Of a stretch of DNA of 64,000 nucleotides, positions 33,803 to 64,000 are shown piece by piece. Under the pieces are notes generated by a model, which worked only from the letters and a program-made list of their open reading frames with translations, had not been told where the DNA came from and made no database searches. The stretch lies in NCBI GenBank assembly GCA_964019335.1, contig OZ025705.1, positions 450,407-514,406 on the forward strand. Reading direction: 5' to 3'. A program made the translations under genes and the position numbers. This DNA comes from Diplonema japonicum (Eukaryota; Protista; Euglenozoa: Diplonemea). Position 1 is the first letter of the stretch. Each line of letters starts with the position of its first letter.

Positions 33803-34570
33803 TTTTATCTTCTTTTTTTTTGTCTTCTTGATGTCCTGTGGTGGGTGATTGTGAAAGTGTTCATATGGAATGCGAGGAGAGAGGGGAAAAAATAGAATTT
33901 AAAAAAAAAAAAAGAAAAAAAAGAAAAGATGAAGGGGAGGAGTGGGAATTGTTTAACCCTTAAACCGGACGGAGCACCGATACTTCATCAGCTTTTTTTT
34001 TTTTTTTTTTTTTTTTTGAAAACAAAAAAAAAAGAAAAAAAAAAAGAAAAAAAAAACATGTCTTGTATTGTCCTTGGAAAAAAAAAAAGACATGTTGTCG
34101 AGAATTCGAAATTCCTAACACATAACAAAATTGACCATTTAGATGTTTTGAGGATGCTATGGATTATTCTCTCGTGTTGATGAAATTGCCTTTTCCGTCC
34201 TTCAAAGGGTTAAAACAAGAAGAAAAAAGAGAATAAAAAGAAAAAGGGAGGGGGGGAATAGGGTGCTCACCAAGATAGCGTGCCTTGGAAAGAGAATTGA
34301 ATAAAAAAAAAATATAAAAAAAAAAACAAATGAGATGGAAGGTGGAGAACGAGCGACACGGAAACAGAGGTCGGTATGGCGGTCTTTTTTTTTTTTTCTT
34401 GACAGAAGTGATTCCTTTTTCTCTTCGTTTCTTCATTCTGTCAACAATCTACATGTATGACCAGCATCCTTAACAAGCTAAGCTTCCTGAGGGCTCCACA
34501 GCATCAAATAAGGTGCAGCTTTTATTTATTCTTTTGTTTCCACCCCCATTCCTTTTAAATTGTATAACCC

Positions 34571-41629: not shown

Positions 41630-44600
41630 CTATTCCTCTTCGCTGCTGGACCAGTGCTCACCGAGCTCCTTGGCCTTCTTCTTGGCGAGCTCACGCTGCT
41701 TCTTCTCCTTACGGGTAAGCTTCTTCTTCGCCTGCTTAACCTGTGGGGGGAAAAGGGTTCATTTTAATAATAATAATAATAATTATTTTTTTTTTCTTTA
41801 AAACATACCTTGGTAACGTTACCAAGTGCGTCGACCATCTCCTCCATGGCAACGCTCTCTGTCTTCTCCTTCATGACGGCCTCCATCCAGTCAGCGTCAC
41901 CCTGACAGTCGAGGCGGCCGATACCGTCGTCACCCTTCTCGACCAACCAGGTCTCGGGGCAGAGGGCCTTCGAGAACTGGTCGTTATGGGTGATGATCAC
42001 GACTCCTCCCTTGAACTGCTCGATGGCGCCGGCGAGGGCGGCGAGGGACTCCCTGTCCAAGTAGTTGGTGGGCTCGTCCAGGATGACGATGTGTGGCTGG
42101 TCCCACATCGCAGCTCCGAGCACAACCTTCACCTTCTGTCCACCGGAGAGCTGCGACATCTGGGTGTGGGTAGCGTGTTCCCTTTCCATCCCGACGTCCA
42201 CGAGGAGCTTCTCGACGTTGGACTGGGTCAGAGGCCTCTTGAACCTGTTATGAAAAGAAAAAAAATAGTAATATTATACTTTTTTTTTTTTTAATATACC
42301 TCCCCTCCTCAGCAAGGATCTTCTCAGCAGTCTGCTTAACGTGCTTGCCCCAACCACCTTCCTCAAGCTTGTCCTCGTTGATGAAACCAGTAGGACCCTC
42401 ACCGCTGCCCTTGGTGGCGAACCTAACCTCGTACATGTACCCAGCCCTCTTCTGGTTCTTACGGACACCGGTAAGCTTCTCGATGACGTGCTTCTGCCTC
42501 TTCAGACCCTCGTCGTCGGTGAACTCCCAGGTCCTCACCTCCAAGAGCTTCTTCTCCTCCTCCTCGGTGAGGATCATGGTGACCTTCTCCAAGGCCTCCT
42601 TGTCGGTACCGTATTCGTACCTCCAGAGGATGTACTCGGTGGGGGTCATCTTCAAGTGCTTCTCAATGTGATGGAAAGCGTGCTGGGCAACGTAGGCGAC
42701 CTTCGCGTTGGGGTTCTTCCAGGTCGTACCCTTGTCCGGGTTCAGCTCTCCGGTCAACAGCTTGATCATGGTCGACTTACCGGCACCGTTGGGACCGAGA
42801 CAGGCGACCCTGCTTCCCATGGACACCCTCACGGTGAGGTTCACGACGGTGGGCTTCGGGTTCCCGGGGTAGGTGAAGTCAACCTTGTCCATCTTGATAA
42901 GCACCTTACCCCTCGAGCTCACGCCCTCCAAGAAACCAGGGTCCGGGAACCTGAAGGAGAGACCCTTCGACGACTTCAGCTCGAAGTAGGACTTCGCCTC
43001 GGGGAACTCCTCCACGAAGGCCTTGATGCTCCCCTTGAAGTTGTGGAGACGGAGGTTGTCGATGTGGATGATCCTGCTGCAGCAGGTCTCCAGGAGGTGC
43101 GCGTTCTGCGACACGATCATGCAGGTCACGTCCTTCAGCCCCCTGATGTAGTCCTCCACCCAGGCAACGTTCTTCACGTCCAAGTGGTTCGTGGGGTCGT
43201 CCATGAGCAGGATGTCGGCCTTCTGAAGCATCGCCCTTGCGAGGGCGAGCTTCATCCTCCACCCACCGGACAGCGAGGACACGGGGTCCATGATCCTGGC
43301 GGCCTTCCCGCCCTGCTCGCCGGTTCCTGCGAACCCGACCTTGTCGAGGGCCGAGATGACGGCGTCCTTCGAGATGTTCGCGGCCTTGATCCTGGAGTCC
43401 TCGAAGATGTACTCGAGGCAGGTCAAGTGGGACAGCTCTCCGAGGATGTCCGCCTCGACGAACACGGTCCTCACCTCTGTGCTGGGGGGGAAGCCCTCCA
43501 CCTGGTCGTTTGCGATAGCCTTCAGGAGCGAGGTCTTCCCGCTGTCGTTTCCACCGAGAAGCCCGTACTTCGCACCCTTCAGGAGGCGAAGCTGCGTGTT
43601 CTTCAGAAGGATCTTGGTACCGTAGGCAAGGGTGAAGCGGCAGTTGCAGAGCTCCGCCGCGTCCTCCTCCTCCTCGATCACGGTCCCGGTCATCGCGTTC
43701 TCGCACTGCTTGAACAGCATCTCACCGAGGGTGTCCGCGTCCTTCTCCGTCTTGCACACGGACAGAAGGTTCTTCGCCCACACCTTCGGCTGCATCACCT
43801 TCATCTCGAAGTTCGAGGCGCAGAGGTCGGCCACGAAGGCGAGGAGCACGGGGTCCGACACCGTCACCCTCTTGTCCTTCTGCAAGACCTCCAGGAACTT
43901 CTTCGAGTCCATGGACTGCGACTTCAAGAGGTCGACGTTCTTCTTCAACTTCTCAATCTGCAGCTGAACCTTCCCGCACACCTCACGGCACTCGGGGTCG
44001 GCAACGTGGATCGCCGCCTGCTCCAGGGCAGGGGTCAGCTTGGGGATCAGGGGCTCCGCCTCCGTCGCCACCTCCACAAGCTTCGACAAGTTGTCCGTGA
44101 TCTTAGCCGACTGCCTCACGATCTTCTTCTCACCCTCACGGAAACCACGGACCAACAAGGGGGTGATGATCGCGAGCTCGGGCCTCTCCACCGTCGCCAC
44201 GAACTTCGTGCACGAGAGCTTGAAGATGGAGTCGGGAACGTTGTCCGGCTCCATCAGCGCCTCCACCAGAACGGGGATGAGCTCCTCGACGTCCTTGTTC
44301 TTCACCACGTCGGTGATCGCCTTCAGGGTCTGCTCCGCCTCCTCGCTCACCTGCACCTTGGTGTCGTGGAGAAGGTCGCACACGGCGGGCACGAGCTCGG
44401 GCATCGACACGGACACGGCCCCGGGGCAGTCCCTCGCGAACCTCCCGATCGACTCCAGACCAGCCACCTTCACCTGGAACTTCGTCGAGTCCAAGCAGTG
44501 CATCATCTCTGCCATGGTCGAGCAGGCCACAGCGGGGTTCGACGCCGCACGACCCACGAACTGCATCGCCGCGTCGTGAGCCGCCTTCGCCACCGTCTTC

Positions 44601-44899
44601 GCCTTGTCACCCACGAGCTGGAAGACCACGGGGAACAGCTTGATCACGTAGGCCTCCAGGTGGTTCTTCAGGTCCGCCGAGAGGGACCCGAAAGCGAGGC
44701 ACGCCGCCTCCCTCTTCGCCTCAGCCTTCTTCCCGCCTCCGGTAGCGGTCTCGATGGCCTGGAAGAGACCAGCCTCCGCGAGGGCCGCTCCGTCCACCTC
44801 CCTCACCATCTCTGCGAGCTTCTGCGCCGCCTCCACGGAGGGCTTCGCCTCCAGCTCGGAGAACATCTTCACGGACTCAGTTGCAAGTTGGGGTGCCAT
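41630..44899 (-). CDS. eEF3: Elongation factor 3, copy 2 (same exons and introns; TAG stop)
   Basis: Translation identical to copy 1; stop is TAG at 41630-41632. Confidence 0.92.
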
Positions 44900-44991
44900 T
44901 TTTTTTATATAAAAAAAAAGAAGCGAGTGATAAAAGGGGTTTTTTTTTTGTGTGTTCTTTTGATATTTGAACAGAAGTATCCTTTGATGGT

Positions 44992-45011
44992 GTTGTTGTT
45001 GTTGTTGTTGC

Positions 45012-45097
<86 letters not shown>
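44992..45097. repeat. (TTG)n microsatellite, 21 nt longer than in unit A
   Basis: Direct inspection and the change in offset between the two units. Confidence 0.95.
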
Positions 45098-45098
<1 letters not shown>

Positions 45099-45895
45099 GT
45101 GTGTTTGACTTAAGAAAAAATAAAAAAGAAGAAGAAAAAGAAAACCAGGGGAAATAATAATAATTATTATAAGCCATAAACAATAAGAACAAAGAAACGA
45201 TAAAAGGAAGAGAAGGAAAAAAAAAGGGGGGGTGCTCTCTTTTTTTTTGATTTTTATTATTATTGTTGTTAAAAATTTAAGAAGATGGATCAATAATAAC
45301 CAAAAAGAAATGTGAAACTAAACTATACTTTCTGTCTTTTTTTATTTATTTATTTATTTTTTAAAAAAAAAGGCGATGTTTAAGGGCAAATCCCACTCGA
45401 GGACCACCCTTGAAAAAAAAAACAAGCCAAGCCAAGCCAAGGTAAGGTAAGAAGGAAAGGGTTTTTTTAGAAGATGAAGAGGGGTTACTTACTTGCCTCT
45501 GTTTTAAGAAAAATAAAATAAAATAAGAGGGGGAAAAGGAAGGGAGGACAGAAAGGAGGGGGGGGAAAAGAAGAAGAATAATAAAAATATAAAAATAAAA
45601 ATAAAAAACGTGCGTTTGTTCCCCTAAGCCCGAGACAAATCACTTTATTAAGGAAATACGAATCTATAAAAAAAAGGGGGGGGGGAAAGAGAAAAAAAAA
45701 GAATACTGACAAACTCCCGGATGCGAAAAAAGACCTGGGCATTTACAGTATTCGATTTAAATTTTTCAGTGTGCAAAGATGCTCACTCTTTAAATTAAAA
45801 AGAAAAAGAAAAAAAGAAAAGAAAAAAAAACCATGTAGCATCTTTAAAATAAAAAAAAAACCCCTTAATCTTACTCAATATAATTATATTTTACT

Positions 45896-45928
<33 letters not shown>

Positions 45929-45930
<2 letters not shown>

Positions 45931-48049
45931 AGTCAACCTCCTCCATCTTAGACTCACCCTCATCCTCAGCAGCAGTGGTGTCAGCCTCAACAGGAACATC
46001 TTCTTCATCATCATCATCGATTGACAGCCCCAGCTTGATCATACGGTGGATCCTTTCAGCGTAACCAGCAGGGTCCTCCAGAGAGAAACCGGAGGTGAGG
46101 AGCGAGGTCTCGAAGAGGAGGAGCACCAGGTCCTTCACAGTCTTGTCGTTGGCGTCGGAGTCAGCCTTCGACTTCAAGGTTTTCACGATCGGGTGCGCCG
46201 GGTTCACCTCCATGGTCTTCTTGCTCACCATGTAGCCGCTGCTGGAGGAGTCCCTCAGAGCCTGCATCTTCATGATCTGTTCCATGTGGGCGCTCCACCC
46301 GAACTCCGAGGTGACGAGGATGCAAGGGGCCTGCGCGAGACGGTCCGACAGCATCACCTTCTCCACCTTGTCTCCCAGGATGTCCTTCATGGTCTTGCAG
46401 AGGGTCTCGAAGGCAGCCTTCTCCTCCTCCTTCTGCTTCTTCTCCTCCTCCGTCTCCTCGAACTTCAACCCTTCCTTCGTCACGCACCTGAACTTCTTGT
46501 CCTCGTACTCCTTCAGCTGCTGCATCGCGTACTCGTCGATCGGGTCCGTCATCAGAAGCACCTCCAAACCCCTCTTCTTGCACTGCTCGATGAACGGAGA
46601 GTTCTCGATCTTGGCCTTGCTCTCCCCGGTGATGTAGTAGATCTCCTTCTGCTCCTCCTTCATCCTCGTCACGTAGTCCTTCAGAGAGGTCGTCTCCTCC
46701 CCGCTCTTCGTCGAGAAGTACCTCATGAACTCAGCGAGCTTCTTCCTGTTCTGCGAGTCCTCGTGGATCCCGAGCTTCAGGTTCTTCCCGAAGTGCTCGT
46801 GAAGCTTCGCGAAGTCCTCCTTGTTCTCGCTGATCTCCTCCACCATCTCAAGGGTCTTCTTCACGATGTTCTTCTTGATCACCTTCAGGATCTTGTTCTG
46901 CTGCAGGTTCTCACGCGAGATGTTCAGGGGAAGGTCCTCGCTGTCCACGATCCCCTTGATGAAGGAGAGCCACTCGGGGATGAGGTCCTCGCAGCTGTCC
47001 ATGATGAACACCCTCCTCACGTAGAGCTTGATGTTGGTCTTCTTCTTGTTCGGCTCGAACATGTCGAAGGGAGCCCTCCTCGGGATGAAGAGGATCGCCC
47101 TGAACTCCAGCTGTCCCTCCACCGCGAAGTGCTTCACCGCGAGGTGCTCCTCCCAGTCGTTCGAGATCGCCTTGTAGAAGCTCCCGTACTCCTCCTTCGT
47201 GATCTCCTTCGGGTCCCTCGTCCAGAGGGGCTTGTTCTTGTTCAGCTTCTCCATCTCCTTCGTCACCTCCTTCACCTTCTTCGTCTTCTTCTTCTTCTCC
47301 TCTCCCTCCTTCACCTCCTCCACCTTCGGTTCGTCCTCTCCTTCCTTCTTCTCCTCCTCCTTCTTCTTCTCCTCCTCCTCGTCCTCGTCCTCGTCATCCG
47401 TCACCTCCTTCTCGTTCGTCTTCTCCACCTCCAGCTCGATGTCGTAGCCGATGAACTCAGAGTGCTTCTTCACAAGGTCCTTGATCCTCCTCTCCTCCAA
47501 GAACTCCAGCTGGTCGTCCTTCAAATGGCAGATGATCTTGGTTCCCCTCTTCAGCTCCGCATCCTCGCACTTCGTCACCGTGAAGGTCCCCCCCGCAGCG
47601 GATTCCCACTGGTGGCACTCGTCGTCGTTGTGCTTCGAGATCACCGTCACCTTGTCCGACACCAGGTACGCGCTGTAGAAACCCACACCGAACTGCCCGA
47701 TCATCGACATGTCCGCCCCGGCCTCCAGAGCCTCCATGAACCCCTTCGTTCCGGACCTCGCGATCGTCCCCAGGTTGTTCACCAGGTCAGCCTTCGTCAT
47801 CCCCACACCCGTGTCCGTCAGCGTGATCGTCTTCGCCGCCTTGTCCGTGTGGATCTGGATCAGCATCCTCTCCTCCTCCTTCAGCGCTTCCTTGTCCAGC
47901 AGCGACATGTGGCGCATCTTGTCCAGAGCGTCAGACGAGTTCGAGATGAGCTCTCGCAAGAAGATCTCCTTGTTCGAGTAGAACGTGTTGATGATCAAGC
48001 TCATCAACTGGTTGATCTCAGCCTGGAATGCAAAGGTCTCTTCCGCCAT
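45929..48049 (-). CDS. HSP90: Cytosolic HSP90, copy 2
   Basis: Identical to copy 1 from ATG 48049. The track's extension to 48217 runs into unrelated repeat sequence. Confidence 0.96.
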
Positions 48050-48364
48050 TTTTATCTTCTTTTTTTTTGTCTTCTTGATGTCCTGTGGTGGGTGATTGTG
48101 AAAGTGTTCATATGGAATGCGAGGAGAGAGGGGAAAAAATAGAATTAGGTTCACTGCAGCTGCAGGTATGTACATATGTCCTGAAATGTTGTATTTGGAT
48201 GTAATAGAAAAGTACAAGAGGAGGGTATGTGTGTTTATACAACCTGTGTAAACAGATCGGTTCCTTAATCGTATTTAAAAAAAGAAGGGGGGGAAGCAAT
48301 ATATTTTTACAGGTAGGTAATGGGTGAGTGCGTTTATGTTTTGAACAACTGTGTAAAACAGTGC

Positions 48365-50450: not shown

Positions 50451-50912
50451 GACTAGTGCGTTTCCGGACGAGGTGTGTGTTGCCTTAGGTTGTAAGGCTT
50501 CAGCCTTCAGAACCTTGATGGCGTCTTGCAGCTCCGTGATTCGTGCTTTGCAAGACCAAGTTTTGCCACGGTATCACGAAGCTGGTATGGGTTGTGGTTT
50601 ATCGTCTTTATGGCCTCAAGACGATAAACCCGTTCGTCTTCCACATTCGGGGGGAAGTGGTGCAGGTACCCGGGGTCCTGTGCATACTCACACGAAACAG
50701 CCTGGCAAGATGCCAACAATCTTCCCATCTCAGACAGAAACCTGTCGTCCTGTGTTGGTTTCTTGTGTCGCTCCCCTCCGGTGCCCCAGAAGTGGGCTCT
50801 GAAGGTTGTACCTTCTCCTTTCCCCTTCATGAAATACAACATTTCATCATGGCTGAGGCCATTCTTGTTGCCGGTCTGGGTAAGGTCTTGTGTTTTCACA
50901 TATTTCTGTGAG

Positions 50913-51235
50913 CAGTGATGGGTGAATCCGGTCCGGTCCGGTGTACCCAATTTACCAGACTGACCGGACTGACCGGATCGGCTGGACTGACCGGACTCGA
51001 AAATTTTTGCAATTTTTGACACACCTGCAAACACTTTTTTTTCAAATATTTTTGGACAATGATTTTTTTTTTCCTTTTTTTTTTTTTTTTTCTTCTTCTT
51101 CTTCTTCTTTGTACCACAGACATGCACAGCTCCATCAAGCCATTTGCACCTATCTACTCCAGTGCACTGCAGCTGCAGGTATGTACAAATGTCTGGTATG
51201 TACATATGTCCGGAAATGTTGTATTTGGATGTAAC
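50913..51235 (+). mobile_element. DNA-transposon end: CAGTGATGGGTGAATCC terminus, GACCG-type 5-mer subterminal repeats and shared internal sequence
   Basis: Same 17-bp terminus as 52183 and, inverted, 53018. About 50990-51235 recurs at about 53835-54062 and in part at 48152-48203. Confidence 0.65.
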
Positions 51236-51360
51236 CCAGCTGTGGTGATCGACGTGGAACGCAGAAGAAGCTACAACCCGGCCGTGGTGAGAGATATATG
51301 AGTTAAAGGACCTGCACAAGACTACTTGATTACAGGGGGTACACCACAGCTTCTTCTGCA

Positions 51361-52454
51361 TTCCGTGTCGTGTCCTTAATGTGTGCAGTGTTCAGCTCAA
51401 CCCCAGCTGGGGCGTCCTGGGTAACCAGATTCTGCTCATGCAGGGGTGGGTCATTCCAGTCACTGAAAAGTCGGAGCTTGGTGGAACGGTGGAACCAGTG
51501 AACCGGAACTTGGTGGAACAGGGAATTCCTTACCTTTTTTTTTTTTTTTTTTTTTTTTTCCTCTTTGCATCATCAAGGTCGAAAGTGGTGACTATATCAC
51601 CACAACACTGACAGCACAATATTCCGTGTCATGTCCTTAATGTGTGCAGTGTGCAGCTCAACACCAGAGCATCTGCAATATGTTCCTCCACTTGGGTGCT
51701 ACCAGTGATGACCAACGTGGAGGTCAACAGTGAACAACACATCTGATGTACTTCTTATATTTCCATATTTCTGTAATCCCCACCACTAAATAACATGAAA
51801 GAGGTAAAGGAGACCAGTGACAGGGGGTGCACCTCGCATCGTGTCCTTAATGCATGCAGTGTGCAGCTCAACCCCAGCTGGTGCCCTAAGTAGTTTACTC
51901 ACCCTGAGCATCTGCGATTTGTTCTTCCACTCAGGGTGCTACAGGTGATGACTGGCCAAGTGGATGGAGGAAAATGCCTGTTCGTCATGTTGGTGGCACC
52001 TGCACAAGAACTGTTAACTTGATACAGGGGGGGGGCACTGCAGCCAAGTTGTAGCTTCTTTTGTGTTCTGCATTGTGTCCTTAATGTGTGCAGTGTGCAG
52101 CTTAACCCCAGCCAGAGCAACACAACCCAGGGTAACCAACATTCTGTGCTCATGCAGTTTGCTGCCAATTCATCACCCTGAGCAGTGATGGGTGAATCCT
52201 AATTAGGACTAGACCAGACTGGACCAGACCAGACCAGACCAGACCGGACCAGACCAGACCAGACCAGACCAGACCAGACCAGACCAGACTGGACTGGACT
52301 GGACTGAACCAGACTGGACAAGATACAACCACAACACCACATCCCCCCTTTTTTTTTGCTGTGGAATTCAAATGTATAAACAGATGTCTACAAGAAAAGA
52401 TGTTACACAGGTACTGAGAGATGACAACAACAACAAAAACAATGAGAAACAAAG

Positions 52455-52485
<31 letters not shown>

Positions 52486-52620
52486 ACATTTAAGGGTACC
52501 TGTGGTATGTGGCAGGACGCCTGAAGAGTCTCAATCTATCTCTTGATCAAACCTTTCTGCTGTGGTGTGGCCTTCCATGTTGTGTCCTTAATGTGTGTGG
52601 TGTTCAGCTCAACCCTAGCC
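51361..52620. repeat. Five dispersed copies of a ~40-bp core tgtccttaatgtgtgcagtgtgcagctcaaccccagc
   Basis: Copies near 51370, 51631, 51841, 52075 and 52582. Confidence 0.8.
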
Positions 52621-53018
52621 AGGGTGCCCCAGGTAACCAAGATTCTGCACTCATGCGGTTTGCTTGGTGATGACTGATGAGGAGGTCAACAGTGAACACA
52701 TCTGATGTTTTTCTTATATTTTCATGTTATCCCCACCACCTGAAAAAGAAGATATTCGTTTTTTTTTTTTTTTCTTTGTTTCTCATTGTTGTTGTTGTTG
52801 TCATCTCTCAGTACCTGTGTAACATCTTTTCTTGTAGACATCTGTTTATACATTTGAACTCTGCAGCAAAAAAAAGGGGGGGATGTGGTGTTGTGGTTGT
52901 ATCTTGTATGGTCTGGTTCAGTCTGGTCCAGTCTGGTCAGTCTGGCATAATTGGGTCGAAATTCATGCCGGATCTGGTCCAGTCTGGTCTAGTCCTAATT
53001 AGGATTCACCCATCACTG
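52183..53018. mobile_element. Foldback/MITE-like element with ~270-bp inverted arms and CAGTG termini
   Basis: cagtgatgggtgaatcctaattaggactagaccagactggaccaga at 52183 is perfectly inverted, ending at 53018. Inner arms ~52300-52460 and ~52760-52925 are also inverted. No target-site duplication seen. Confidence 0.8.
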
Positions 53019-53280
53019 GACTCAGGGGACTCCAAGGGACAGGACAGGAGTCCCCTGAAATTTTCAGGGGTCTGGAGGGGACTCAGGGGACTGGAGGGAC
53101 TCAAGGGACTCAGGGGACTCTTGGGACCAAAAAATTTCATTGTGTTTTTTGTGTCACAAAGGCCCAAATTTAGGCTGGGGCTTGCATTTTTTTGGCACTT
53201 TTGGTTTCAAAGGCTCAAAAAAAGAGGTCCTAGGTTTGGGTGGGATGTGAGGCAAGGCTCATACTACCTTGTTGTGACTA

Positions 53281-53315
<35 letters not shown>

Positions 53316-53834
53316 TCAGGGGGTTTGGAGACCTGCTTTGAAAAAAATATTAAAAAGAGGCCTTTGCAAGAAAAGTACAAAGCAAAAAAAAAAAAAAAAA
53401 AAAAAAAAGTAAAAAAAAGGGATGGGCAGTGCTTTACACAGGTTGTATAAACATACCCTCCTCTTGTACATATTATTTATTATTTCCCCCCTTTTCTATT
53501 ACATCCAAATACAACATTTGATGTGGAAAGTAGAAACAACAGCTTGGCTTAGGTGTGTGATAAAATGTGAGAAGACAAGAAAAAAAAGAAGGAAAAAAAA
53601 GGTAAACACATCATGTATGTCAAAAAAAAATCAAGGATTTTTTTCTCTTTTTTTTTTCCCCATTTTTTTTTTCCAAAGGGAAAAAAAAAAAAAAAGTTGC
53701 AAAACTATCAAAAATAATGACAGTGTTGGGGAGAGTCCCATGAGTCCTGTGAGTCCTGTCAAGTCCCATCCTGTGGAGTCCCATGAGTCCCATCCAGGCC
53801 TGTATTCCGTTTTAGGGGATGGGATGGGACTGAC

Positions 53835-54062
53835 CAACACTGACTGGACTCAAAAATTTTCTGCAATTTTTGACACACCTGCAAACACTTTTTTTTCAAA
53901 TATTTTTGGACAATGATTTTTTTTTTTTGCTTTTTTTTTTTTCTTTTTCTTCTTCATACCACAGACATGCACAGCTCCATCAAGCCATTTGCACCTATCT
54001 ACTCTGGTGCACTGCAGCTGCAGGTATGTACATATGTCTGGAAATGTTGTATTTGGATGTAA
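53835..54062 (+). repeat. Second copy of the transposon subterminal/internal segment at ~50990-51235
   Basis: Shares gcaatttttgacacacctgcaaacac...gcagctgcaggtatgtacatatgtc...tttggatgtaa. Confidence 0.8.
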
Positions 54063-54066
54063 TATT

Positions 54067-54445
54067 GGGGCTCTGGTCTACAAGCAGGGTGAGAGCTGCC
54101 ACGACCCAAGGTGCAGGACTGAGGGGATGGATGTATGGGGTGACCATGCCCAGGGATGTGGCAATGCCAGGATTGCAAGGCATGACTGGGTGAAGGAGAC
54201 CATCCACAGACACTGTCAGTGGGCTGGGGTGAGTGCAATGATGGAGAAGATGGGGCTGATCCTGGGGTTGTCCCAGTGCCCAGCAGATGTGTTCTTCCCA
54301 GGTGGGGTGGGGGGTTCCCACCCAATGGCTATGGATGTGGTCATTGTGCACCCAAGGAACAAGTCTTGTGTCAACCAGGTGGTGAAGACTGTGGGGTATG
54401 CAGTGGCAAAGGTGGAACACTACAAGTGCCAGAAGTATGAGGCAG
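54067..54445 (+). mobile_element. Decayed fragment of the zinc-knuckle/endonuclease region of the retrotransposon at 56745-64000
   Basis: Gap-free alignment to 62752-63130 at a constant offset of 8685. Confidence 0.95.
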
Positions 54446-55800
54446 CCAGAGTGGAGGCAGCCAGTTGGGGCCTGACACACCTAGGGGTGGGATCCAGATG
54501 CCAGAGGGAGATCAGCTGATGGGAGTTGGGGCACCAGAAAGGGAACAGTGGGTGGAAGTAGGGGGAGACTTTGTTCAGCTTGACCTGATTGATGTGGTGA
54601 TGGGCATCCCAATTCCGAGAGCAATGGTGCCACTGAGGGTGAGGCTGGGGGACCGACTGCTCAAGTTCATCATCCAGTTTGAGGGCTGGGTGGGGATCAT
54701 CCTTGAAGAAGGAACAGACCCTGGAAGGGAGAGGACTGAGGAGATGCTTCTTGTGAAGGCTGAGTTGCTGGGTGTTCCACTGGGTTGGATGGAGAGTGCC
54801 ACAGCCACATTGTGGGTTGTGAGGTGCAGAAGTTGGAAACATACCATGAGTTTGAGTTCCTGAGGATGGTCCAGGATTTCCAGATCACATACGTGTGTGG
54901 GTGTTCGGCAGTGCAACCTGTTTGTTTCAAGGGTGGCGTGCTCAAGGGGACTCTGGAAATGGCATGGAGGGTGGTCAAGTTGCAGACCCAGGGGTGCAGA
55001 CACTGGGGAAGGAAGGGGTAGTGGGCATTGTGGTGGGAGCCAGCACTACCAAGGTGACACTACATGAGTTCTTGGAGAGGTGCAACACAAGGATAAGGGC
55101 CCCAGTGGGAAAGGTCAAGGACCTGATCAAAGTGAAGGCGTGGGTGAGGGATGGAAGGAAGGTCACCCTTGACATCTATGAGGGGAGGGGGCCCTGTGAG
55201 AAGGAGACAAGGTGCACTGTCCAAGACCATCTGTGGAAGATGGGTGTTGAAGAGGTTGACCTGCAGTCAGTGGTGGTGATGGTCCTGGGGTTGTTTGAGG
55301 ATGTCTCCTTTGAGAGGTACCTTGGGCTGTTGGCCTGGAAGAAGGAGGAAGACAGGGAGAGGTGGCCTGAGGTGGTTGCCACAGACCTCCCCACCCTGGA
55401 AGAGCTGAAGTGGAGCAAGAAGGACAAGAAGTGGGCCCAGGCCTGATGGGCCAGTACTGACTTGGATTGTGTGGAAGGTGGCTAGGTATGGGGGTGGATG
55501 GCACCGTGGTCAAAGCCAACATATGCAGGGGTGAGCTCAAGGGGATGACTGGGCCCCAGTTCAAGTTCTTGGCAGAGCACAGGTTGATGGAAGAGCTGGG
55601 GAGTGACAACCTGGTGTGGGACATGGTCAAGGTGCACAACAAGGAGAACTGGGCCCTGGTGAACAGTGCAGTGGCTTGGCTGCAGCTCGAGTCAGGGAGG
55701 GCACAGGTGGGGCCCATACCCCACAAGAAGAGGTCCAAAGGCTTGCTGGCCAGTGGGGGTGTGGGGGGCTGGTCCCCCCCCCCCTGCCATAGGAAGATGT
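54446..55800 (+). other. GC-rich, strongly CpG-depleted relic with coding-like texture, probably from another mobile element
   Basis: Purine-rich plus strand with broken frames (e.g. 54895-55446); fewer than about 10 CpGs seen in ~1.35 kb; no motif recognised. Confidence 0.4.
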
Positions 55801-56432
55801 GAAACTTTTTTTTTTTTTTTTTTCCAAGAAAAAAAAGGGAAAAATAAAAGAATAGGGAACAGGTGCTACAACAGCCAGGCCAGATAGAACCACTTAGATT
55901 TTTTTTTTTTTTCCTTTTTTTTTTTTTTTATTTTTCTGTTTTTCTTTTTCTTTTTGAAGTGGAACCATCTCAGTCAATGTTTTTTTTTTTTTTTTCTTCT
56001 TTTTTCTTTTGTGGTGATGTGTTTTTCCTGTTTTTGATTTTCTTCTTCCCCCACTCTATGCTTTTTCACATGGACATTGGTCACTCTGCCCCTTTCCCCT
56101 TTGTTGATTCTCCCTCTTTCCCCCTCCTAAATTTTACCCCCTGCCCCACTCATTCCTCCCTAGTATGTTTTTGAATTTGCCTCTTCTTCTTTTAAGCCTT
56201 TTTTGAGATTTTTATTTTTGAATTTTTATCATTTGGAGTTGCTTCTTCATCTTCCCCTCTCCCTCCCATAAAGAAAAAGAGAAACCCATGCCTTCCTCCC
56301 AGGTTGGAACTTGATTGTCTGTTTTGGAATATTTTTATTTTCTCTTAAGGTTTATCGTGCCTTGTGTGTGTCTTTTGAAGAAAAAAAAAAAACATTCTCA
56401 AGTCCCCCTTTTTATTTATTTTCTCAAGTCCC

Positions 56433-56464
<32 letters not shown>

Positions 56465-56490
56465 TTCTCAAGTCCCTCTTTTTATTTATT

Positions 56491-56544
56491 ACCAACGATT
56501 CTAAAGCTACAGTTTCTGTACTTTATTGTTTCTGTACTTTATTG
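56491..56544 (+). other. Spliced-leader exon copy (38 of 39 nt, 56491-56528) followed by a 16-nt truncated SL (56529-56544)
   Basis: accaacgattctaaagctacagtttctgtactttattg + tttctgtactttattg. The 3' half matches the conserved euglenozoan SL (CAGTTTCTGTACT.TATTG). Confidence 0.9.
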
Positions 56545-56744
56545 GTTGTTCATGTTCTGCTGGTGCCTGCCACCTCTGCCTGGGTTTGCCACTGTGTCCA
56601 TCGTCCATCGTCACCATTTTCTTGGGGGGTTGTTTTGCCTGTCAGCCTGCCAAACCCGCAAACCTGCAAACCTGCAAACCCGCAAACCCGCAAACCCACA
56701 AACCTGCAAACCTGCAAACCCGCAAACCTGCCTGCAAACCCACA
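56491..56744 (+). mobile_element. Short non-autonomous derivative: SL, truncated SL, ~107-bp element head and a degenerate (GCAAACCC)n tract
   Basis: 56545-56651 aligns with 56784-56890 and then passes directly into the same 8-mer repeat found at 63787. Confidence 0.7.
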
Positions 56745-56783
56745 AACCAACGATTCTAAAGCTACAGTTTCTGTACTTTATTG
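56745..56783 (+). other. Full 39-nt diplonemid-type spliced-leader exon at the 5' end of the retrotransposon
   Basis: AACCAACGATTCTAAAGCTACAGTTTCTGTACTTTATTG is exactly 39 nt and about 2 nt different from the Diplonema papillatum SL as I recall it. Confidence 0.92.
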
Positions 56784-56955
56784 GTCGTTCGTGTTCTGCT
56801 GGTGCCTGCCACCTCTGCCTGGGTTTGCTGCTGTGTCTGTTGTCTGTTGTTGCCATCGTCTGGGGGGGTTGTTTTGCCTGTCAGCCTGCCCGCTGCTTAC
56901 CGAAAGGATCCCCTCCCCCAACACACACTTTAAAAAAAAATAAAAAAAATAAAAA

Positions 56956-59900
56956 ATGGATCCAAGATGGAACGCAAGAGGAGGTGACCATGCAAACCGC
57001 AGGGAGAAGGAACCCCAACAGGCCGCCAGGCTGCACACGATGCCAGGGCCAACCCAACCAGACTATCTGGTTGGGCAGTATGAATCCCCACCCCCACCCC
57101 CTAGATCCCCCCACCCCCCTTTAGAAAAAAAAAATAAAATAAAAAAATCACTAGCAGAGACCGCGGTTTTGACCGCTGCTGCTACAGTTGCAACCACGAT
57201 CCCTGCAGCCGACCCTGCTATTGTTGAAGAGGGAAGAAAAGAGGGAGAAAAAAAGGGGTGGGTACTGGTGTATGGTGAACACCCTCCTGGGTTGAGGACG
57301 GGCCCGGCCCCTGCCTTCCTGAAAGCCCTGCTTTCAGGAAAGTGGGAGGCCCTGTCTGGGAACTCAGGGAGGGAGACCCTCCAATATGGGTACCGGTGGG
57401 AGGGGATGAACGCCAAGGTGTGCCCCACCATGGGGATCCCAGGGGGGGTGGAGGGGTGGGTGAGGGAGGTGGCTGCTGCTGCAGGGCTTGAGGTGGTCCC
57501 CAACCAGGTACTTGTCAACAAGTACAAGTCTGGTTGTGGGATTGCCGCCCACAAGGACGACGTGAGGCTGGGACCGATTGTCCTAGTCCTCTCGTATGGA
57601 GCTGAGACCACAATGGTCATGAGGAGGGGGGACAGGGTGGTGAAATACCTGGTGCCCCCCTTCTCATGGGCATTGTTGGAAGGTGAAGCGAGACACCAGT
57701 GGACGCACCACATCCCGTCTGGGATGTCCACTGGTGTCAGGGTGTCGATCACCCTGCGTGCGGTAGGCCCCAAGCTCACCTGCACACCCCAGGAAGACCC
57801 ATCCCCTGGGTTAACAGACGAACCCCCTTTTTTAGATCCCCTTTTTTGTGGGCAAGGGGGGGTGGCACTCCCAAGAGAGGATAGTGCCCCACCTGCCCCC
57901 CTTTTTTTTTTAGAACCCTCTTCGGAGGAAAACAGACCCTCTTCGGAGGAAAATAGAGAGAAAGGGGAAGAGGTGGCACTCCTGAGAGAGGGTGGTGCTC
58001 CTCCCCCCCATTTGTCCCCCCCTTTTTCATTTTTAGAGCCCTCTCCAGAGGAACCCTCCACGGAGGTAAAAAACAGACCCTCTTCGGAGGAAAACAGAGA
58101 GAGAGGGGAAGAGGTGGCACTCCTGAGAGAGGGTAGTGTTCCTCCCCCCCATTCGTCCCCCCCTTTTTCTTTTATAGAGCCCTCTCCAGAGGGACCCTCC
58201 ATGGAGGTGAAAAACAGACCCTCTTTGGAGGAAAAAAAGGCAGAGGGAGAGACAGCACGCCTGAGAGAAGGTAGTGCCCCTCCCTCTCTGCCCCCCATTT
58301 TTTCTGGACCCTCTATGGAGGTGTACACCCTGGTCCCCAAGGGCCGGGGGCTTTTTTTGAGGGTGGAAGGGAAAGAAAAAAAAAAAACAAACAAGGAGGA
58401 ACCTTTTTTCTTTTCAAACAACCAGGGGGACCCAGCACCCACCCCCACCGCCCGCCAAGGTGTGGTTGGGGTGGAGGCTGCGAGCGACGTGAGAGCACCA
58501 CTGCACACCCTTGTGAGAAGACAGAAAAGAGCCCCCTGGATTGCCATGGGTGGCAGGGAACCTAAGCCAGCGCCCAAGCGGAAGAAGAACAGGAGGAGGC
58601 ACAGGAGCGAAGCGGCCCTTCAGAGGCGTCGGGAGAAGAGGACCAAGGCGAGGGAGGGGGCGAGGGAGGCTGCCAGACAGGAGAAGAAAAGGCACCGTCG
58701 TGCGAGGAAAGAAGGGAGGAGGAGGGCCTGCAGAGAGGAACACGAGGCCGCCCTGGAACAGAAGCCAGATGACCCTGCAATGGGGCTGAAGCGGACCGAG
58801 GTGGGAACGCCTGGAGCCCAACCCCTGGCACCCAGAATCCCGGCACCTGGGGCTGCAACCGGCACAAGGAGGCACCGCAGACGGACGGGACACAGCAAGG
58901 AAGGGGTGAGATGGGAGCACCTGGGGGCGTGGGCCTGGGTCGCCCTGTTCTCCCTCTTGCTGATCCCAGGGGTGAGGCAGGTGCTGGGGGTGGGCATCGG
59001 GATGGCCCCCTCCTTCCTGCATGCGGCAGTGTTGTGGAAGAGGCCGGGGAGCGACAGGAGGACCACCCGCAGGTCAAGGGTACAGGTGGGGCCCCGAGGG
59101 GATGAATGGTCCGCCGGGGAGCTCGCTTGGCTAGCGGTAGGGGGCACTCTGGTGGGAAGCACTTCAGTTTGGATAGGGGGGCTGATGTCGCTCTGGGCCA
59201 TGGTGGAAGTGATGGTGGGGAAAGCTGGTGCTGGCCCGACCCAGAGATTCGGACCGGTAAAGCTGAAGAAGACAAGACGCGGATCGAGAGGTCACTACCG
59301 GCCGGTGTACTTGGGCCCGCCTAGAAGCTCAAGACGCAGAAAAAAGAAGGAGGACGCCAAGCAAGCGGCGAAGGAACGAGCTGAGACGGAGGATAAGCTC
59401 TTTCAGGCCGAACACCTGGACCCCTTTGCGGACTTGACGCTGGCAGGGGACGCGTTGCAAGGAGGTGGTGACCCTCCCCCCATGGATTTGGATGATGAGC
59501 ACATGGAGGCGCAGAAGGAGGGGGAAAAAGAAGGATCAGACAAACATCAATGCCGGATGGAAGACTGCTCTTTCCGCACCAGTGTGGCAAGCTGTCTAGT
59601 TAAACACCTCAATGCGGTCCACCATCATTTTGTGAAACAAGAGCAGGCGAGGAGCATGAAGGTGAACCTCTGTGGAACGTGTGCTGCGGCGTGCTCGTCG
59701 AACCAGACGCACTGTGCACTACACAGGCAGCGGAATCTGTGGAACCCCGACAAACAACCCAGGGCCGGCAAGTCAGTGGACGAGATCATGAAGAGCTTCA
59801 AGCTGACGAGGAGATCGACGGAGAAGGACGGGAACTGCATGTTCCACGCCCTGGCCGGTTCGCTCGGGGAAGCCTACGGCGACCACACCCACATCAGGAG

Positions 59901-62900
59901 CGAGGTTGTAGAATGGATGAAACACCGGGAGGAGCACTATGCCCCGTTTTGCAGTGAGGGTTGGGACCGGTACTTGGAAGGGATGGGCACAGCAGCGACG
60001 TGGGGAGACCACTTGTGCCTGGCAGCCGCAGCACAAGCGTTTGGCCGCACGATACTCGTGGTTGCTGGGGGGAACAACCCAGTCCTGATGATAGGGGAGT
60101 ACAACTCCGACCACGAGAAGGTGGTGGTGCTGGCGTACAACGGCAACCACTACGAGTATGCAGTCGGAGAGGAGGAGTCGATGATGATGCTCCTTGATGA
60201 GTCCCAATCGGTAGCTCTACAAAAGGCAGGTAAGCAACCCTCCGAGGCCCCGGGTGAGGACATCGGGGAGTGGGACATAATAGACCGTGCGATCCCTGGA
60301 TACGGGAAGGCAGGGGTGTTGGACCAGATGGGGGCAAGGAACCAGCAATTCCTGTACTGTCCGGTGGCGAACTGCGCTAGGTCGAAGTGCAAAAGCACGA
60401 CCCCGTTCAACTCGACAAGGGTATGGAAGTGTCACCTGGATGGGCACCTGGAGAGTGATGAGATCCCGGAGAGCGTTCTGAGGAGACTGGACCTCGAGAG
60501 GTGCCTGGTGTGCAGGGGCTGTGTGTGGAAGGGTCAGGGGTGCCACGACGAGTGCAAAAAGGCGGTGCGAAGGGAAGGGGAATACACGACCCCCCCGCCG
60601 GCCCCGACGAGGACCGAGTTACCCAGCCTGGAAGCCATAGCCGCCATGAACGTCACGACCATGGGGTCGATCCCGACGAGCCTTCAAAGACTGTGGGGGC
60701 TTACCCTTAAGCACACTCTGGGCCGGGCGGTGAAGGACAACACAGAGGAGGCTTGGCTGCTGGTGGCGATGCTCCCCAAAGCCTGCCTGTGGAAGAAGAG
60801 GGGAGGGAAGAAGCGGGACAAGGAGACGGAGCTGAGTGTCCAGGCCAGATTGGAGGAGTGGGAGAAGGGAAATTACATGGCCCTCTGGAATAAGCTGGAA
60901 TCAGGTGAGAAGGGGGAACCTAAGAACGACGAGGTCTCTAAGGTCGCCAGGGCCACGGAACTGTGCAGCAAAGGGAGGTTCTCGGCAGGAAACGCGGCGC
61001 TTGTAGCCCAGGGGCTGGCGGAAGACAATGAGGATTGCTGGAGAGCGCTGCAGAGCAAACATCCAGAGCCACTACACCCCCAATGGGACAACCCGGCGAA
61101 GACGAAGGAAGCGGTAGAAGTCTTGCCAGAAGAAGTGCTGGACGCAATCAGGGACTTCCCGAGGGGGACTGCTGCGGGACCGACTGGTCTGAGAGCCCAG
61201 CACATCAAGGACGCGGTGGACGGAGCTTTTGAGTCTCAAGGCTGTTTGATGTCGGTGACGAGGGCAGTCAACGCATTAGCTAGAGGCACGGCCCCTAGGG
61301 AGGTGGCTCCGCTGATGGCAGGGGCGAACCTTGTGGCCCTCAAGAAGAACGACAGGGACGTGCGGCCCATAGCCGTTGGGGATGTGCTGCGTCGGCTGGT
61401 GGGGAAATCCCTTGTGAAGAAGATCGCTCCGGAAGTGGCCTCTTCGTACCTGAAGAAAGGCGGCCAGGTGGGGGTATCGGTCCCTGCTGGAATGGAGGCG
61501 GCTATACACACCATCAGGCAGTATGTGGACAGGGAACGGGGCAACAAGCAGGAAAACAAGGTGATCCTCAAGATCGACTACGCCAACGCCTTCAACAGTG
61601 TTTGTCGGAGGCAGCTGTGCTCACAGGCCTATGAGCAAGCGTCGGGGCTGTATGCGTGGGCCGATTGGTGCTACAGGGTGCCCTCCCAATTATACTACAA
61701 CGGAAAGGTGATTAAGTCCCAGGAAGGGGTGCAACAGGGGGACCCGATGGGACCGCTGCTGTTCTCTCTGGCCATCCAACCCCTGGTGAACAAGATAAGT
61801 GAAGACTGCAACCTGGACATCCTCCAGTTCTACCTGGACGATGGCGTCCTTGTGGGGAATGTGGATGAAGTGAGAAAGGCGTACAACATCTTGTGTGAGC
61901 TGAGCGGAATGATAGGGCTGAAAGTGAAACCCCAGAAGTGCGAGCTCATATGGGTTAGTGGCGACCTCCCCCAGACAGTGGAGGACACAGGCTTCGATGG
62001 CCTGACAGAAGAGAATTTCCACAAAGAGAGGAACTTCATGCTCCTGGGGGCGCCGATAGGATCGCCGGAGTACACGCAAGCCTTTCTGAACAAACGCTTG
62101 GACGCGCTGGAAGAGAACTTCGACATGCTGACCAAGGTGGGGAGGCAGACAGGGTACACACTTCTCCGGTATTGCAGCTCATACAGCAAACTGGTGTTTT
62201 ACATGAGAGTGGTCCCAGACTCGCATGTGGGAGGGGTCATGCACAGGTTCGACGAGATGGTGCGGAAGACGATGTCGAAGGTGTGCGGCATGCAGTTCGA
62301 GAACGGGTCGAAAGAATGGCAGCAGGCGAAACTGTCCGTAAAAGTCGGTGGGCTTGGGATGAGGAGCTGCCAGGAGCACCTGCGCGCGGCCAACATGGCT
62401 TCGAGGGCGTCGACGATGAAGCTGTGCAAGGAGCTGGATCCCAAATACGAACATGGGCTGGAAGGGGGTGTATGGGGGAGCTGGCTCGAGTGGTTCAACA
62501 GGACGAAGGGCGGCATGCAGATTACACCCGACATGGTGGCCAAGGCCCCCCACATCTGCAGCCAGAGGTGGCTCTCTAGGGTGCTTGATGAGAAGGCGCT
62601 GGAGGACCTCTTGGCGAAAGCAGATGCACGCTCGAGAGCGAGGTTGATGTCGGAGTCAATGCACTATGCGGGAGCGTGGTTGACGGCGACGCCTGACTTC
62701 TACAACCAGCTGTCGGACAACGAGTTTGGGGCTCTGATCAAGTGGTGGTTGGGGGCTCCGGTCTACAAGCAGGGTGAGAGCTGCCACGACCCGAGGTGCA
62801 AGACTGAGGGGATGGACGTATGGGGTGACCATGCCCAGGGATGCGGCAACGCCAGGATTGCGAGGCACGACCGGGTGAAGGAGACCATCCACAGACACTG

Positions 62901-64000
62901 TCAGTGGGCCGGGGTGAGCGCAACGATGGAGAAGACGGGGCTGATCCCGGGGTCGTCCCAGCGCCCGGCGGACGTGTTCTTCCCAGGTGGGGTGGGGGGT
63001 TCCCGCCCAATGGCTATGGACGTGGTCATCGTGCACCCGAGGAACGAGTCTTGTGTCAACCAGGCGGCGAAGACTGCGGGATACGCAGCGGCGAAGGCGG
63101 AACACTACAAGCGCCAGAAGTATGAGGCGGAGCTCGCCAAGACACGCGTGGCCTTTGTACCTTTCGCGATGGAGACCTTTGGGGGGTTCGGGGAGGCAGC
63201 AGTCTACCTCACGAAGAAACTGTCCAGGAGCATAGCTGCGCGGGCTCACGGGGACAGAGTCTCGATACACAGGCGTGTGGTCCAAGAGGTGTCAACGGCC
63301 ATGATGAGATCGATAGCAGGGGCGCTGTTAGTCAAAGGGCCTGTACAGTTGGATCCAGGGCCCCCGGTACCGGACGGCGAAGAGGAAAAAAAGGACAACG
63401 AGGAAGCGAACAACGAACCCAACACTGAATCCAACACTGACCTCACAGAGGACTCCTTCGGCAATGAAAAAACCACCGAAGCTGAGGAGTCGTCCGAGAG
63501 GGAAGTGAAGGGACAGGGAGGCGGACCCCCAATCACGGTGGCCCACCAGCTGGATGCCCTTCTGGAGCAGACGAAGAAGGACCTGGACGCCCGAATGCAG
63601 CAGCAGCGAAAGGCGGAACCGGTGGAGGGTGGAACACAAGGGAAAGCGGGAGCAGGACTCGAAGCAGCCTCGCCGGGAGGAGAAGACACGGAGATGGTCG
63701 GAACAGGATCCAGCGAGAGGGCTGGGCAGGGAGGGGAGCTTGACCCGAAGGCCCAGGAAGATGGGAAGAGACAAGGGGCGACTGACGCAAACCCGCAAAC
63801 CCGCAAACCCGCAAACCCGCAAACCCGCAAACCCGCAAACCCGCAAACCCGCAAACCCGCAAACCCGCAAACCCGCAAACCCGCAAACCCGCAAACCCGC
63901 AAACCCGCAAACCCGCAAACCCGCAAACCCGCAAACCCGCAAACCCGCAAACCCGCAAACCCGCAAACCCGCAAACCCGCAAACCCGCAAACCCGCAAAC
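56956..64000 (+). CDS. Retrotransposon polyprotein >=2348 aa: AlkB, Pro/Glu repeats, basic/hydrophobic region, C2H2, OTU, Zn fingers, RT, CCHC, RLE, acidic tail
   Basis: Manual frame +1 translation from ATG 56956 (in-frame TAA at 56950) finds no stop to 64000. Not in the ORF track because there is no stop codon. Confidence 0.92.
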   Translation, partial: MDPRWNARGGDHANRREKEPQQAARLHTMPGPTQPDYLVGQYESPPPPPRSPHPPLEKKNKIKKSLAETAVLTAAATVATTIPAADPAIVEEGRKEGEKKGWVLVYGEHPPGLRTGPAPAFLKALLSGKWEALSGNSGRETLQYGYRWEGMNAKVCPTMGIPGGVEGWVREVAAAAGLEVVPNQVLVNKYKSGCGIAAHKDDVRLGPIVLVLSYGAETTMVMRRGDRVVKYLVPPFSWALLEGEARHQWTHHIPSGMSTGVRVSITLRAVGPKLTCTPQEDPSPGLTDEPPFLDPLFCGQGGVALPREDSAPPAPLFFLEPSSEENRPSSEENREKGEEVALLREGGAPPPHLSPPFSFLEPSPEEPSTEVKNRPSSEENRERGEEVALLREGSVPPPHSSPPFSFIEPSPEGPSMEVKNRPSLEEKKAEGETARLREGSAPPSLPPIFSGPSMEVYTLVPKGRGLFLRVEGKEKKKTNKEEPFFFSNNQGDPAPTPTARQGVVGVEAASDVRAPLHTLVRRQKRAPWIAMGGREPKPAPKRKKNRRRHRSEAALQRRREKRTKAREGAREAARQEKKRHRRARKEGRRRACREEHEAALEQKPDDPAMGLKRTEVGTPGAQPLAPRIPAPGAATGTRRHRRRTGHSKEGVRWEHLGAWAWVALFSLLLIPGVRQVLGVGIGMAPSFLHAAVLWKRPGSDRRTTRRSRVQVGPRGDEWSAGELAWLAVGGTLVGSTSVWIGGLMSLWAMVEVMVGKAGAGPTQRFGPVKLKKTRRGSRGHYRPVYLGPPRSSRRRKKKEDAKQAAKERAETEDKLFQAEHLDPFADLTLAGDALQGGGDPPPMDLDDEHMEAQKEGEKEGSDKHQCRMEDCSFRTSVASCLVKHLNAVHHHFVKQEQARSMKVNLCGTCAAACSSNQTHCALHRQRNLWNPDKQPRAGKSVDEIMKSFKLTRRSTEKDGNCMFHALAGSLGEAYGDHTHIRSEVVEWMKHREEHYAPFCSEGWDRYLEGMGTAATWGDHLCLAAAAQAFGRTILVVAGGNNPVLMIGEYNSDHEKVVVLAYNGNHYEYAVGEEESMMMLLDESQSVALQKAGKQPSEAPGEDIGEWDIIDRAIPGYGKAGVLDQMGARNQQFLYCPVANCARSKCKSTTPFNSTRVWKCHLDGHLESDEIPESVLRRLDLERCLVCRGCVWKGQGCHDECKKAVRREGEYTTPPPAPTRTELPSLEAIAAMNVTTMGSIPTSLQRLWGLTLKHTLGRAVKDNTEEAWLLVAMLPKACLWKKRGGKKRDKETELSVQARLEEWEKGNYMALWNKLESGEKGEPKNDEVSKVARATELCSKGRFSAGNAALVAQGLAEDNEDCWRALQSKHPEPLHPQWDNPAKTKEAVEVLPEEVLDAIRDFPRGTAAGPTGLRAQHIKDAVDGAFESQGCLMSVTRAVNALARGTAPREVAPLMAGANLVALKKNDRDVRPIAVGDVLRRLVGKSLVKKIAPEVASSYLKKGGQVGVSVPAGMEAAIHTIRQYVDRERGNKQENKVILKIDYANAFNSVCRRQLCSQAYEQASGLYAWADWCYRVPSQLYYNGKVIKSQEGVQQGDPMGPLLFSLAIQPLVNKISEDCNLDILQFYLDDGVLVGNVDEVRKAYNILCELSGMIGLKVKPQKCELIWVSGDLPQTVEDTGFDGLTEENFHKERNFMLLGAPIGSPEYTQAFLNKRLDALEENFDMLTKVGRQTGYTLLRYCSSYSKLVFYMRVVPDSHVGGVMHRFDEMVRKTMSKVCGMQFENGSKEWQQAKLSVKVGGLGMRSCQEHLRAANMASRASTMKLCKELDPKYEHGLEGGVWGSWLEWFNRTKGGMQITPDMVAKAPHICSQRWLSRVLDEKALEDLLAKADARSRARLMSESMHYAGAWLTATPDFYNQLSDNEFGALIKWWLGAPVYKQGESCHDPRCKTEGMDVWGDHAQGCGNARIARHDRVKETIHRHCQWAGVSATMEKTGLIPGSSQRPADVFFPGGVGGSRPMAMDVVIVHPRNESCVNQAAKTAGYAAAKAEHYKRQKYEAELAKTRVAFVPFAMETFGGFGEAAVYLTKKLSRSIAARAHGDRVSIHRRVVQEVSTAMMRSIAGALLVKGPVQLDPGPPVPDGEEEKKDNEEANNEPNTESNTDLTEDSFGNEKTTEAEESSEREVKGQGGGPPITVAHQLDALLEQTKKDLDARMQQQRKAEPVEGGTQGKAGAGLEAASPGGEDTEMVGTGSSERAGQGGELDPKAQEDGKRQGATDANPQTRKPANPQTRKPANPQTRKPANPQTRKPANPQTRKPANPQTRKPANPQTRKPANPQTRKPANPQTRK
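63787..64000. repeat. Perfect (GCAAACCC)n array, >=26 units, open at the window edge
   Basis: Direct inspection. Confidence 0.98.

Follow-up and report, generated by a model that had tools for sequence, protein, structure and literature searches.

CG methylation in Cryptococcus neoformans is maintained by Dnmt5, as Huff and Zilberman are said to have described in 2014. In vertebrates, 5mCpG decay affects old transposon copies throughout the genome at about tenfold over background, and CpG change in mammals is about tenfold over other substitutions. To our knowledge, the trypanosomatids, the best-studied relatives of the diplonemids, have no DNA 5mC, and to that extent a preliminary description of the locus analysed here was right that CpG methylation of transposons is not a recognised feature of the well-studied euglenozoans. 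The premise does not carry over to the euglenozoans other than trypanosomatids, in which DNMT5 and DNMT1 genes have been reported (PMC12344493), DNMT5 in euglenozoans having a SNF2 domain (PMC12344493; PMC9998398). The 5mC pathway of D. papillatum was predicted from gene content (PMC10161547), and in the literature that we searched there was no published link between DNMT5 and diplonemids, and no diplonemid or euglenozoan methylome. According to Catania et al. (10.1101/149385), the Dnmt5 of Cryptococcus is CG-specific and maintenance-only, does not spread, and places its mark on centromeric and subtelomeric DNA that is rich in transposons. Repeats are permanently inactivated by C>T change in the RIP of Neurospora, in the CpG/TpCpG RIP-like hypermutation of basidiomycetes (PMC3318451) and by the Dim2 mutator of Zymoseptoria (PMC8016269), and in this respect the decay reported below resembles all three.

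We analysed a window of 64 kb of Diplonema japonicum DNA that reaches the end of its contig; positions below are those of the window unless another contig is named. The genome note of D. japonicum describes a 62.3-Mb assembly from 102x PacBio HiFi reads at QV 59 (PMC13598402), and the assembly that we searched comprised 62.5 Mb in 132 contigs. All element comparisons are pairwise counts. The 379-bp segment at 54067-54445 (+ strand), part of an old retroelement copy, aligned without gaps over 379 columns to its CpG-retaining counterpart at 62752-63130 (+ strand). The 34 differences consisted of 23 CG>TG, 9 CG>CA, no CG>TA and 2 A/G changes outside CpG, so that 32 of the 33 CpGs of the counterpart were converted and a single one remained, the observed/expected ratio falling from 0.86 to 0.04. 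Every count given in the preliminary description was correct. Changed bases numbered 32/66 within CpG versus 2/313 outside it (Fisher p = 1e-25), so that a retroelement copy has indeed decayed in the direction CpG>TpG/CpA. The segment corresponds to residues ~1934-2060 of the open frame of the element, 3' of the reverse-transcriptase domain. A genome search showed that the CpG state of this stretch is common to at least 40 copies, 99-100% identical to the counterpart, while the TG/CA states occur in the decayed copy alone. This distribution makes the polarity of the changes, from CpG to TG/CA, secure.

The decayed bases are also supported by public sequencing runs, examined as contigs, a check of the kind proposed at the outset. 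Unitigs of public run X1 matched them exactly at 54195-54494, 54724-54952, 55235-55327 and 55414-55536, and public run X5, from another study, spans 54572-55107 with no differences listed. A sequencing or assembly artefact, e.g. miscalls at modified bases, has nothing specific in its favour beyond the fact that such bases can bias some basecallers, and its probability is negligible given a HiFi assembly at QV 59 and exactly matching unitigs in public data of two or more studies. Mixed-strand miscalls would not leave almost no CpG and yet no TpA, and the degree of loss differs between copies.

Through a genome search with 50900-56650 and pairwise alignments, we found that 54067-54445, given at first as the whole decayed fragment, is only a part of it: the old copy occupies 54067-56464 (+ strand), and the CpG-poor domain around it extends over ~50.9-58.5 kb. 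The old copy is a 5'-truncated poly(A) retroelement copy. It is truncated at 54067, carries an internal deletion of ~877 bp at 54446-54448, continues with the remaining C-terminal part of the ORF and the 3' UTR, and ends in A25 (56440-56464); in the CpG-retaining copies the ORF runs on through the equivalent regions. When 128 CpGs were scored in the old copy against a CpG-retaining copy, 10 were CG, 76 TG, 39 CA and 3 other. Over 2.37 kb, 115/128 CpGs had thus become TG or CA and none TA, compared with 35/2115 changed non-CpG bases (Fisher p = 9e-95). Non-CpG divergence of this copy was 0.6-2.0%, with 1.2-1.7% non-CpG change alongside the 115 conversions; CpG loss was 92-97%, and C>T at non-CpG cytosines was ~150-fold rarer than at CpG. 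The residual CpGs include those at 54102, 54616, 54654 and 54892.

Both strands were struck, loss was equal with each of the four bases 5' of the C, and no effect of the NCGN context was seen. Equal loss in every NCGN context accords with a generic CpG methylase, DNMT5 for example, but neither with an HhaI-like enzyme nor with GCGC-type or TC/CC-type specificities. The same results bear on an APOBEC-like cytidine deaminase that would edit the cDNA or RNA of a retroelement ahead of its integration. Such editing would act on a retroelement substrate and produce C>T or G>A transitions, but it is contradicted by changes on both strands within one copy (76 TG, 39 CA), strictly at CpG and whatever the base 5' of the C. 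Moreover, flanking repeats outside the element decayed alike, and in an inserted copy of full length the decay is graded with respect to the adjoining chromosomal DNA, as described below. We therefore regard this explanation as highly improbable.

The core of the CpG-poor repeat domain (52-56.5 kb) had an observed/expected CpG ratio of 0.03-0.12, whereas in the gene-bearing other 50 kb of the window the median was 0.77 and the ratio never fell below 0.40; outside such domains the ratio for the D. japonicum genome is ~0.8. Across the CpG-poor zone TpG and CpA were in excess, at 1.2-1.7x expectation. Proximal to the old copy lies a subtelomeric repeat block (50911-54066) of several families and A-runs, which is shared with the ends of contigs C19, C31, C53, C105 and C115 and contains 19 CpGs in the kb-window at 51-52 kb and 1-6 per kb further on. 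We compared these unrelated repeat families (50.9-54.07 kb) with their paralogues on C19, C115 and C53, counting as CpG-type the CG<->TG/CA differences and the TG<->CA doubles, and found that 52-64% of the differences were of this type. Each comparison contained 14-19 TG<->CA doubles, which have no other source than independent decay of one ancestral CpG after duplication. A Pfam search with seven ORFs in or near the CpG-poor zone gave no match.

Eleven chromosome ends, the window's own included, were sampled for a marked CpG-poor zone, defined as an observed/expected ratio of ~0.2 or less over at least 1 kb. Such zones were present at 6/11 ends, and the shared repeat block at 5 of those 6. 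The end of C31 has the shared block with moderate depletion (0.24-0.54). At the ends of C13, C40, C75 and C9, where the element adjoins other DNA, there was no marked CpG-poor zone.

Distal to the old copy, the window contains a relic (CAAACCCG)n array (56651-56728, + strand) and then a full-length terminal element (56745-63785, + strand), which is cut at 63785 and capped by a terminal (CAAACCCG)n array at the contig end (63786-64000, + strand). An open frame at 56953-63999, of 2349 codons and running off the window, encodes AlkB-type 2OG-Fe(II) oxygenase, OTU and reverse-transcriptase domains; the ORF of other copies extends ~540 codons past the point at which the window copy is cut. This AlkB-OTU-RT element is a poly(A) retroelement that occupies mainly chromosome ends, its 3' side pointing outward, and a further copy lies on the minus strand at C13 4343-11122. 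Of the copies of the 379-bp stretch, which number at least 40, nearly all lie within ~1-11 kb of contig ends, and the 3' side of the element faces the end. The relic array is probably a former chromosome end, and the outward order of old copy, relic 8-mer array and younger copy indicates that the end grew by successive additions. Contigs C13 and C19 also begin with this 8-mer repeat. The polarity of the repeat is opposite to that of a canonical telomere, the C-rich strand being the one that reads 5'->3' towards the contig end, and the canonical (TTAGGG)4 had zero occurrences across the assembly. The 3' point at which an element is cut, and then capped by the 8-mer, varies (at 63785 in the window, at the equivalent of 60995 in C13), many element/8-mer joints occur in public-run contigs, and this combination looks like erosion followed by healing. 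As a speculation, part of the 'dozen AlkB-type genes' of D. papillatum that were taken as demethylases (PMC10161547) might be AlkB domains borne by retroelements.

The terminal element carries a shoulder of decay at 56811-58472 (+ strand), in which 44 CpGs were lost (37 to TG, 7 to CA) against 1 other change; 46% of the CpGs within ~1.8 kb were gone. Going distally, CpG loss per 500 bp was 64, 59, 36, 38 and 8%, then 0-9%. The gradient starts at the junction of the element with the domain and fades over ~2 kb. Read-derived contigs agree with the direction of change, with C in other copies where the window copy has T (57288-57449). Within the frame the shoulder changes comprise 14 synonymous and 20 missense, a ratio at which they look unselected. 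The 20 CpG-derived missense changes lie in the N-terminal part (56953-58472), some of them in the AlkB domain (nt 57359-57760), and the frame remains open; judged from the sequence, this copy is probably already impaired.

Two further copies showed the same pattern to other degrees. A copy on C53 with another truncation point had lost 9/17 and 11/23 CpGs where it adjoins a CpG-poor zone and 7% further from it. The element coordinates that are half-decayed there are untouched in the window, and the C53 copy is about half decayed at these positions because they adjoin the CpG-poor zone. In a copy on C115, CpG loss was uniform at 24%, with 0.17% other change. The C53 and C115 copies together thus show 7, 24 or 50% CpG loss with other change of only 0.2-0.8%.

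We then considered whether age alone accounts for the position of decay. If all subtelomeric DNA were methylated, distal copies could be clean through retrotransposition or break-induced replication renewing the ends, an account that would alter the part of our interpretation concerned with position and leave the part concerned with methylation. It agrees with the arrangement of older material proximally and younger material distally (old copy, relic 8-mer array, new element), and the stepped profile of the shoulder (64/59, 36/38, 8, 0%) could reflect conversion tracts. However, CpG-retaining copies are 0.45-0.6% apart at non-CpG positions with ~2-3% of CpGs lost, and the old copy is at 0.6-1% with 92-97% lost; similar non-CpG divergence implies equal age by that measure, yet CpG loss differs ~40-fold. 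CpG-retaining copies far from a contig end, at 40 kb and at 166 kb, are clean as well, and age alone is in our judgement an unlikely explanation.

The preliminary description also suggested active, transposon-targeted or RIP-like mutagenesis, and the data do not support the transposon-targeted or RIP-like part of this. At least 40 near-identical 7-kb copies of the element retain their CpGs; two of them were compared in full. Between CpG-retaining copies, 0/153 and 4/624 CpG bases were changed, without CpG bias. As a negative control from the gene-bearing part we used a 6.5-kb duplicate at 27405-33899 (second copy at 41631-48146), and found zero mismatches, one 21-nt indel and 401/401 CpGs kept in each copy. 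The duplication is tandem-like and encodes an EF3-like ABC protein and HSP90; the window's HSP90 gene matched Diplonema japonicum at 99% identity. The second negative control, paralogues at 16734-22595 that are 85-87% identical, had CpG-type changes in 9-10% of the differences, about the share of CpG among the bases. Neither control showed a bias towards CpG change.

Classical homology-triggered RIP-like defence, in which duplicates are sensed (e.g. before meiosis) and hypermutated, would account for repeats as targets, for C>T transitions and for the favouring of one strand, as in single RIP passages, and CpG-type RIP-like patterns are known in basidiomycetes (PMC3318451). It is nevertheless very improbable here. 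A 7-kb element remains unmutated in at least 40 copies that are 99-100% identical, the linked 6.5-kb duplication, a perfect one with 401/401 CpGs intact, would be an ideal RIP substrate, decay tracks distance from the domain and not element coordinates, and no RID/DNMT4-like gene was found in the search with the PF00145 profile. RIP-type systems share with it a bias towards one strand and a targeted change that far outweighs the background; unlike RIP, this decay has no homology trigger, a CpG instead of a CpA context, a graded and position-dependent form, and no RID-like gene found. Because the element copies and the duplicate are spared, unrelated repeats are decayed and a gradient runs into the neighbouring element, decay is aimed at a domain of the chromosome and neither at the element nor at homologous sequence.

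A search of the genome for C5-methyltransferases with the PF00145 profile found five genes, namely three DNMT2-like, one M.HhaI-like and one DNMT5, and no DNMT1, DNMT3 or RID/DNMT4-like gene. A survey of this kind had been suggested in the preliminary description, with DNMT5 among the candidates. The DNMT5 gene is a 2140-aa ORF on contig C108 (71105-77524, minus strand) with MTase, SNF2 and Helicase_C domains. Against the DNMT5 of Cryptococcus (PDB 7r76) it gave E = 2.5e-234 in five stretches; the motif IV cysteine region reads GTVCKDFS here and GTSCVDYS in Cryptococcus, and ILENV and GNAMTTTVVG are identical between the two. The encoded protein is apparently complete. The M.HhaI-like C5-methyltransferase has a 150-aa N-terminal extension. 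The genome also contains one Tet/JBP gene with an 897-aa frame, as expected for a base-J lineage; the three DNMT2-like genes, the M.HhaI-like gene and the Tet/JBP gene are jointly listed at C74, C10, C36, C11 and C20:468781-469245. No SRA/UHRF1 domain (PF02182) was found in the genome, and no Pfam chromodomain was detected in the genome or in the DNMT5 protein.

D. japonicum thus resembles Cryptococcus neoformans in having an orthologous DNMT5 with MTase and SNF2 domains, in a specificity that appears to be for CpG only, and in the targeting of repeat-rich domains at chromosome ends and not of genes. It differs in that methylation is read here from the mutational footprint alone, in that no SRA/UHRF1-like protein or Pfam chromodomain was detected, and in belonging to a very distant lineage. 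Unlike the Dnmt5 of Cryptococcus, which has no de novo activity or spreading, the decay in D. japonicum extends ~2 kb into newly arrived DNA. The likeness to vertebrate 5mCpG decay lies in the CG>TG/CA changes, the excess of TpG and CpA, and the stronger decay of older copies; unlike in vertebrates, the decay in D. japonicum is restricted to discrete domains of a few kb and runs at ~100-fold over background.

With a DNMT5 gene present in the genome, the spectrum and direction of the mutations, their gradients and their confinement to a domain are best read as the result of CpG methylation of the subtelomeric domain followed by 5mC deamination, which we consider probable. The methylation-driven origin suggested in the preliminary description is plausible in the light of an apparently complete DNMT5 and of changes that are strictly at CpG on both strands. 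CpGs of the domain would be symmetrically methylated, now or for long in the past, and this methylation would most likely be maintained by the DNMT5 of the genome. Deamination of 5-methylcytosine would leave a T:G mismatch, fixed as TpG after an event on the plus strand or as CpA after one on the minus strand; no TpA would arise, because the site is no longer CpG once the first strand has changed. Over time the core would have lost nearly all of its CpGs while other substitutions stayed near 1%, and ~2 kb on either side of it would decay more slowly. The most likely cause is thus a known kind of process, the methylation-driven CpG decay of silent repeats.

Three points count against methylation with deamination as we have described it. 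First, in four separate comparisons the rate of change at CpG exceeded that at other bases by ~60-500-fold per base: ~540-fold in the shoulder, ~80-fold in the C115 copy and, within the old copy, ~174-fold for the ORF and 60-86-fold for the 3' part. This is far above the roughly tenfold excess of mammals, in agreement with the earlier view that the change looks too extreme for ordinary passive decay, and spontaneous deamination alone may be insufficient. Second, sense-strand C>T was 2-5 times commoner than change on the other strand, at 76:39 in the old copy (p = 7e-4) and 37:7 in the shoulder (p = 5e-6), which symmetric methylation does not predict. The sense-ward bias was absent in C115 (17:15) and present in the C53 copy, which lies the other way round with respect to its contig end and thereby makes an origin in replication direction doubtful. 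An origin of the bias in context (RCG versus YCG) was rejected, as C on the plus strand was lost at 25-31% and C on the minus strand at 7-17% with any 5' base. Third, if the enzyme is maintenance-only, by analogy with the Dnmt5 of Cryptococcus, and with no DNMT1, DNMT3 or SRA found here, methylation of new elements would be left unaccounted for. It would call for an enzyme, DNMT5 or a different one, that can act de novo or spread; otherwise the gradient would stem from the renewal of distal parts through recombination or break-induced copying.

The rate and the strand bias are what an enzyme-accelerated, domain-restricted CpG mutator would explain, in which the methyltransferase or a partner catalyses deamination in silent chromatin. 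This explanation still needs methylation machinery and overlaps with methylation followed by deamination. The CpG excess in the four comparisons, the 46% CpG loss against a single other change over ~1.8 kb, and the 37:7 strand ratio, as for a processive or strand-selective enzyme, all argue for it, and the Dim2-dependent mitotic C>T hypermutation in Zymoseptoria offers a precedent (PMC8016269). On the other side, the continuum of 7, 24, 50 and 92-97% loss would equally be given by slow decay, the 60-500 ratio is uncalibrated against the organism's baseline mutation rate, and the PF00145 search found no RID-like or extra DNMT. We regard it as rather unlikely.

As evidence of CpG methylation at work in Diplonema the footprint is strong, though indirect, and it places this methylation in discrete repeat domains of a few kb at chromosome ends. 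Until now, 5mC in diplonemids had only been predicted from gene lists. Silencing here is directed by position, not by homology, which raises the question of how a maintenance-type DNMT5 marks newly inserted DNA. With exact coordinates, residual CpGs and gradients now on hand, the domain-restricted, graded and strand-biased form of the decay is directly testable. As a tentative extension, which we hold to be improbable, diplonemids may possess an active, DNMT5-dependent CpG mutator restricted to chromatin domains, possibly with enzyme-catalysed deamination, that spreads a couple of kb from subtelomeric or other repeat domains and irreversibly kills adjacent retroelement copies. If this were true, a lineage remote from the fungi would have arrived at a RIP-like outcome with no sensing of homology, and the Euglenozoa, the textbook case of 'base J, no 5mC', would ancestrally have used CpG methylation for genome defence.
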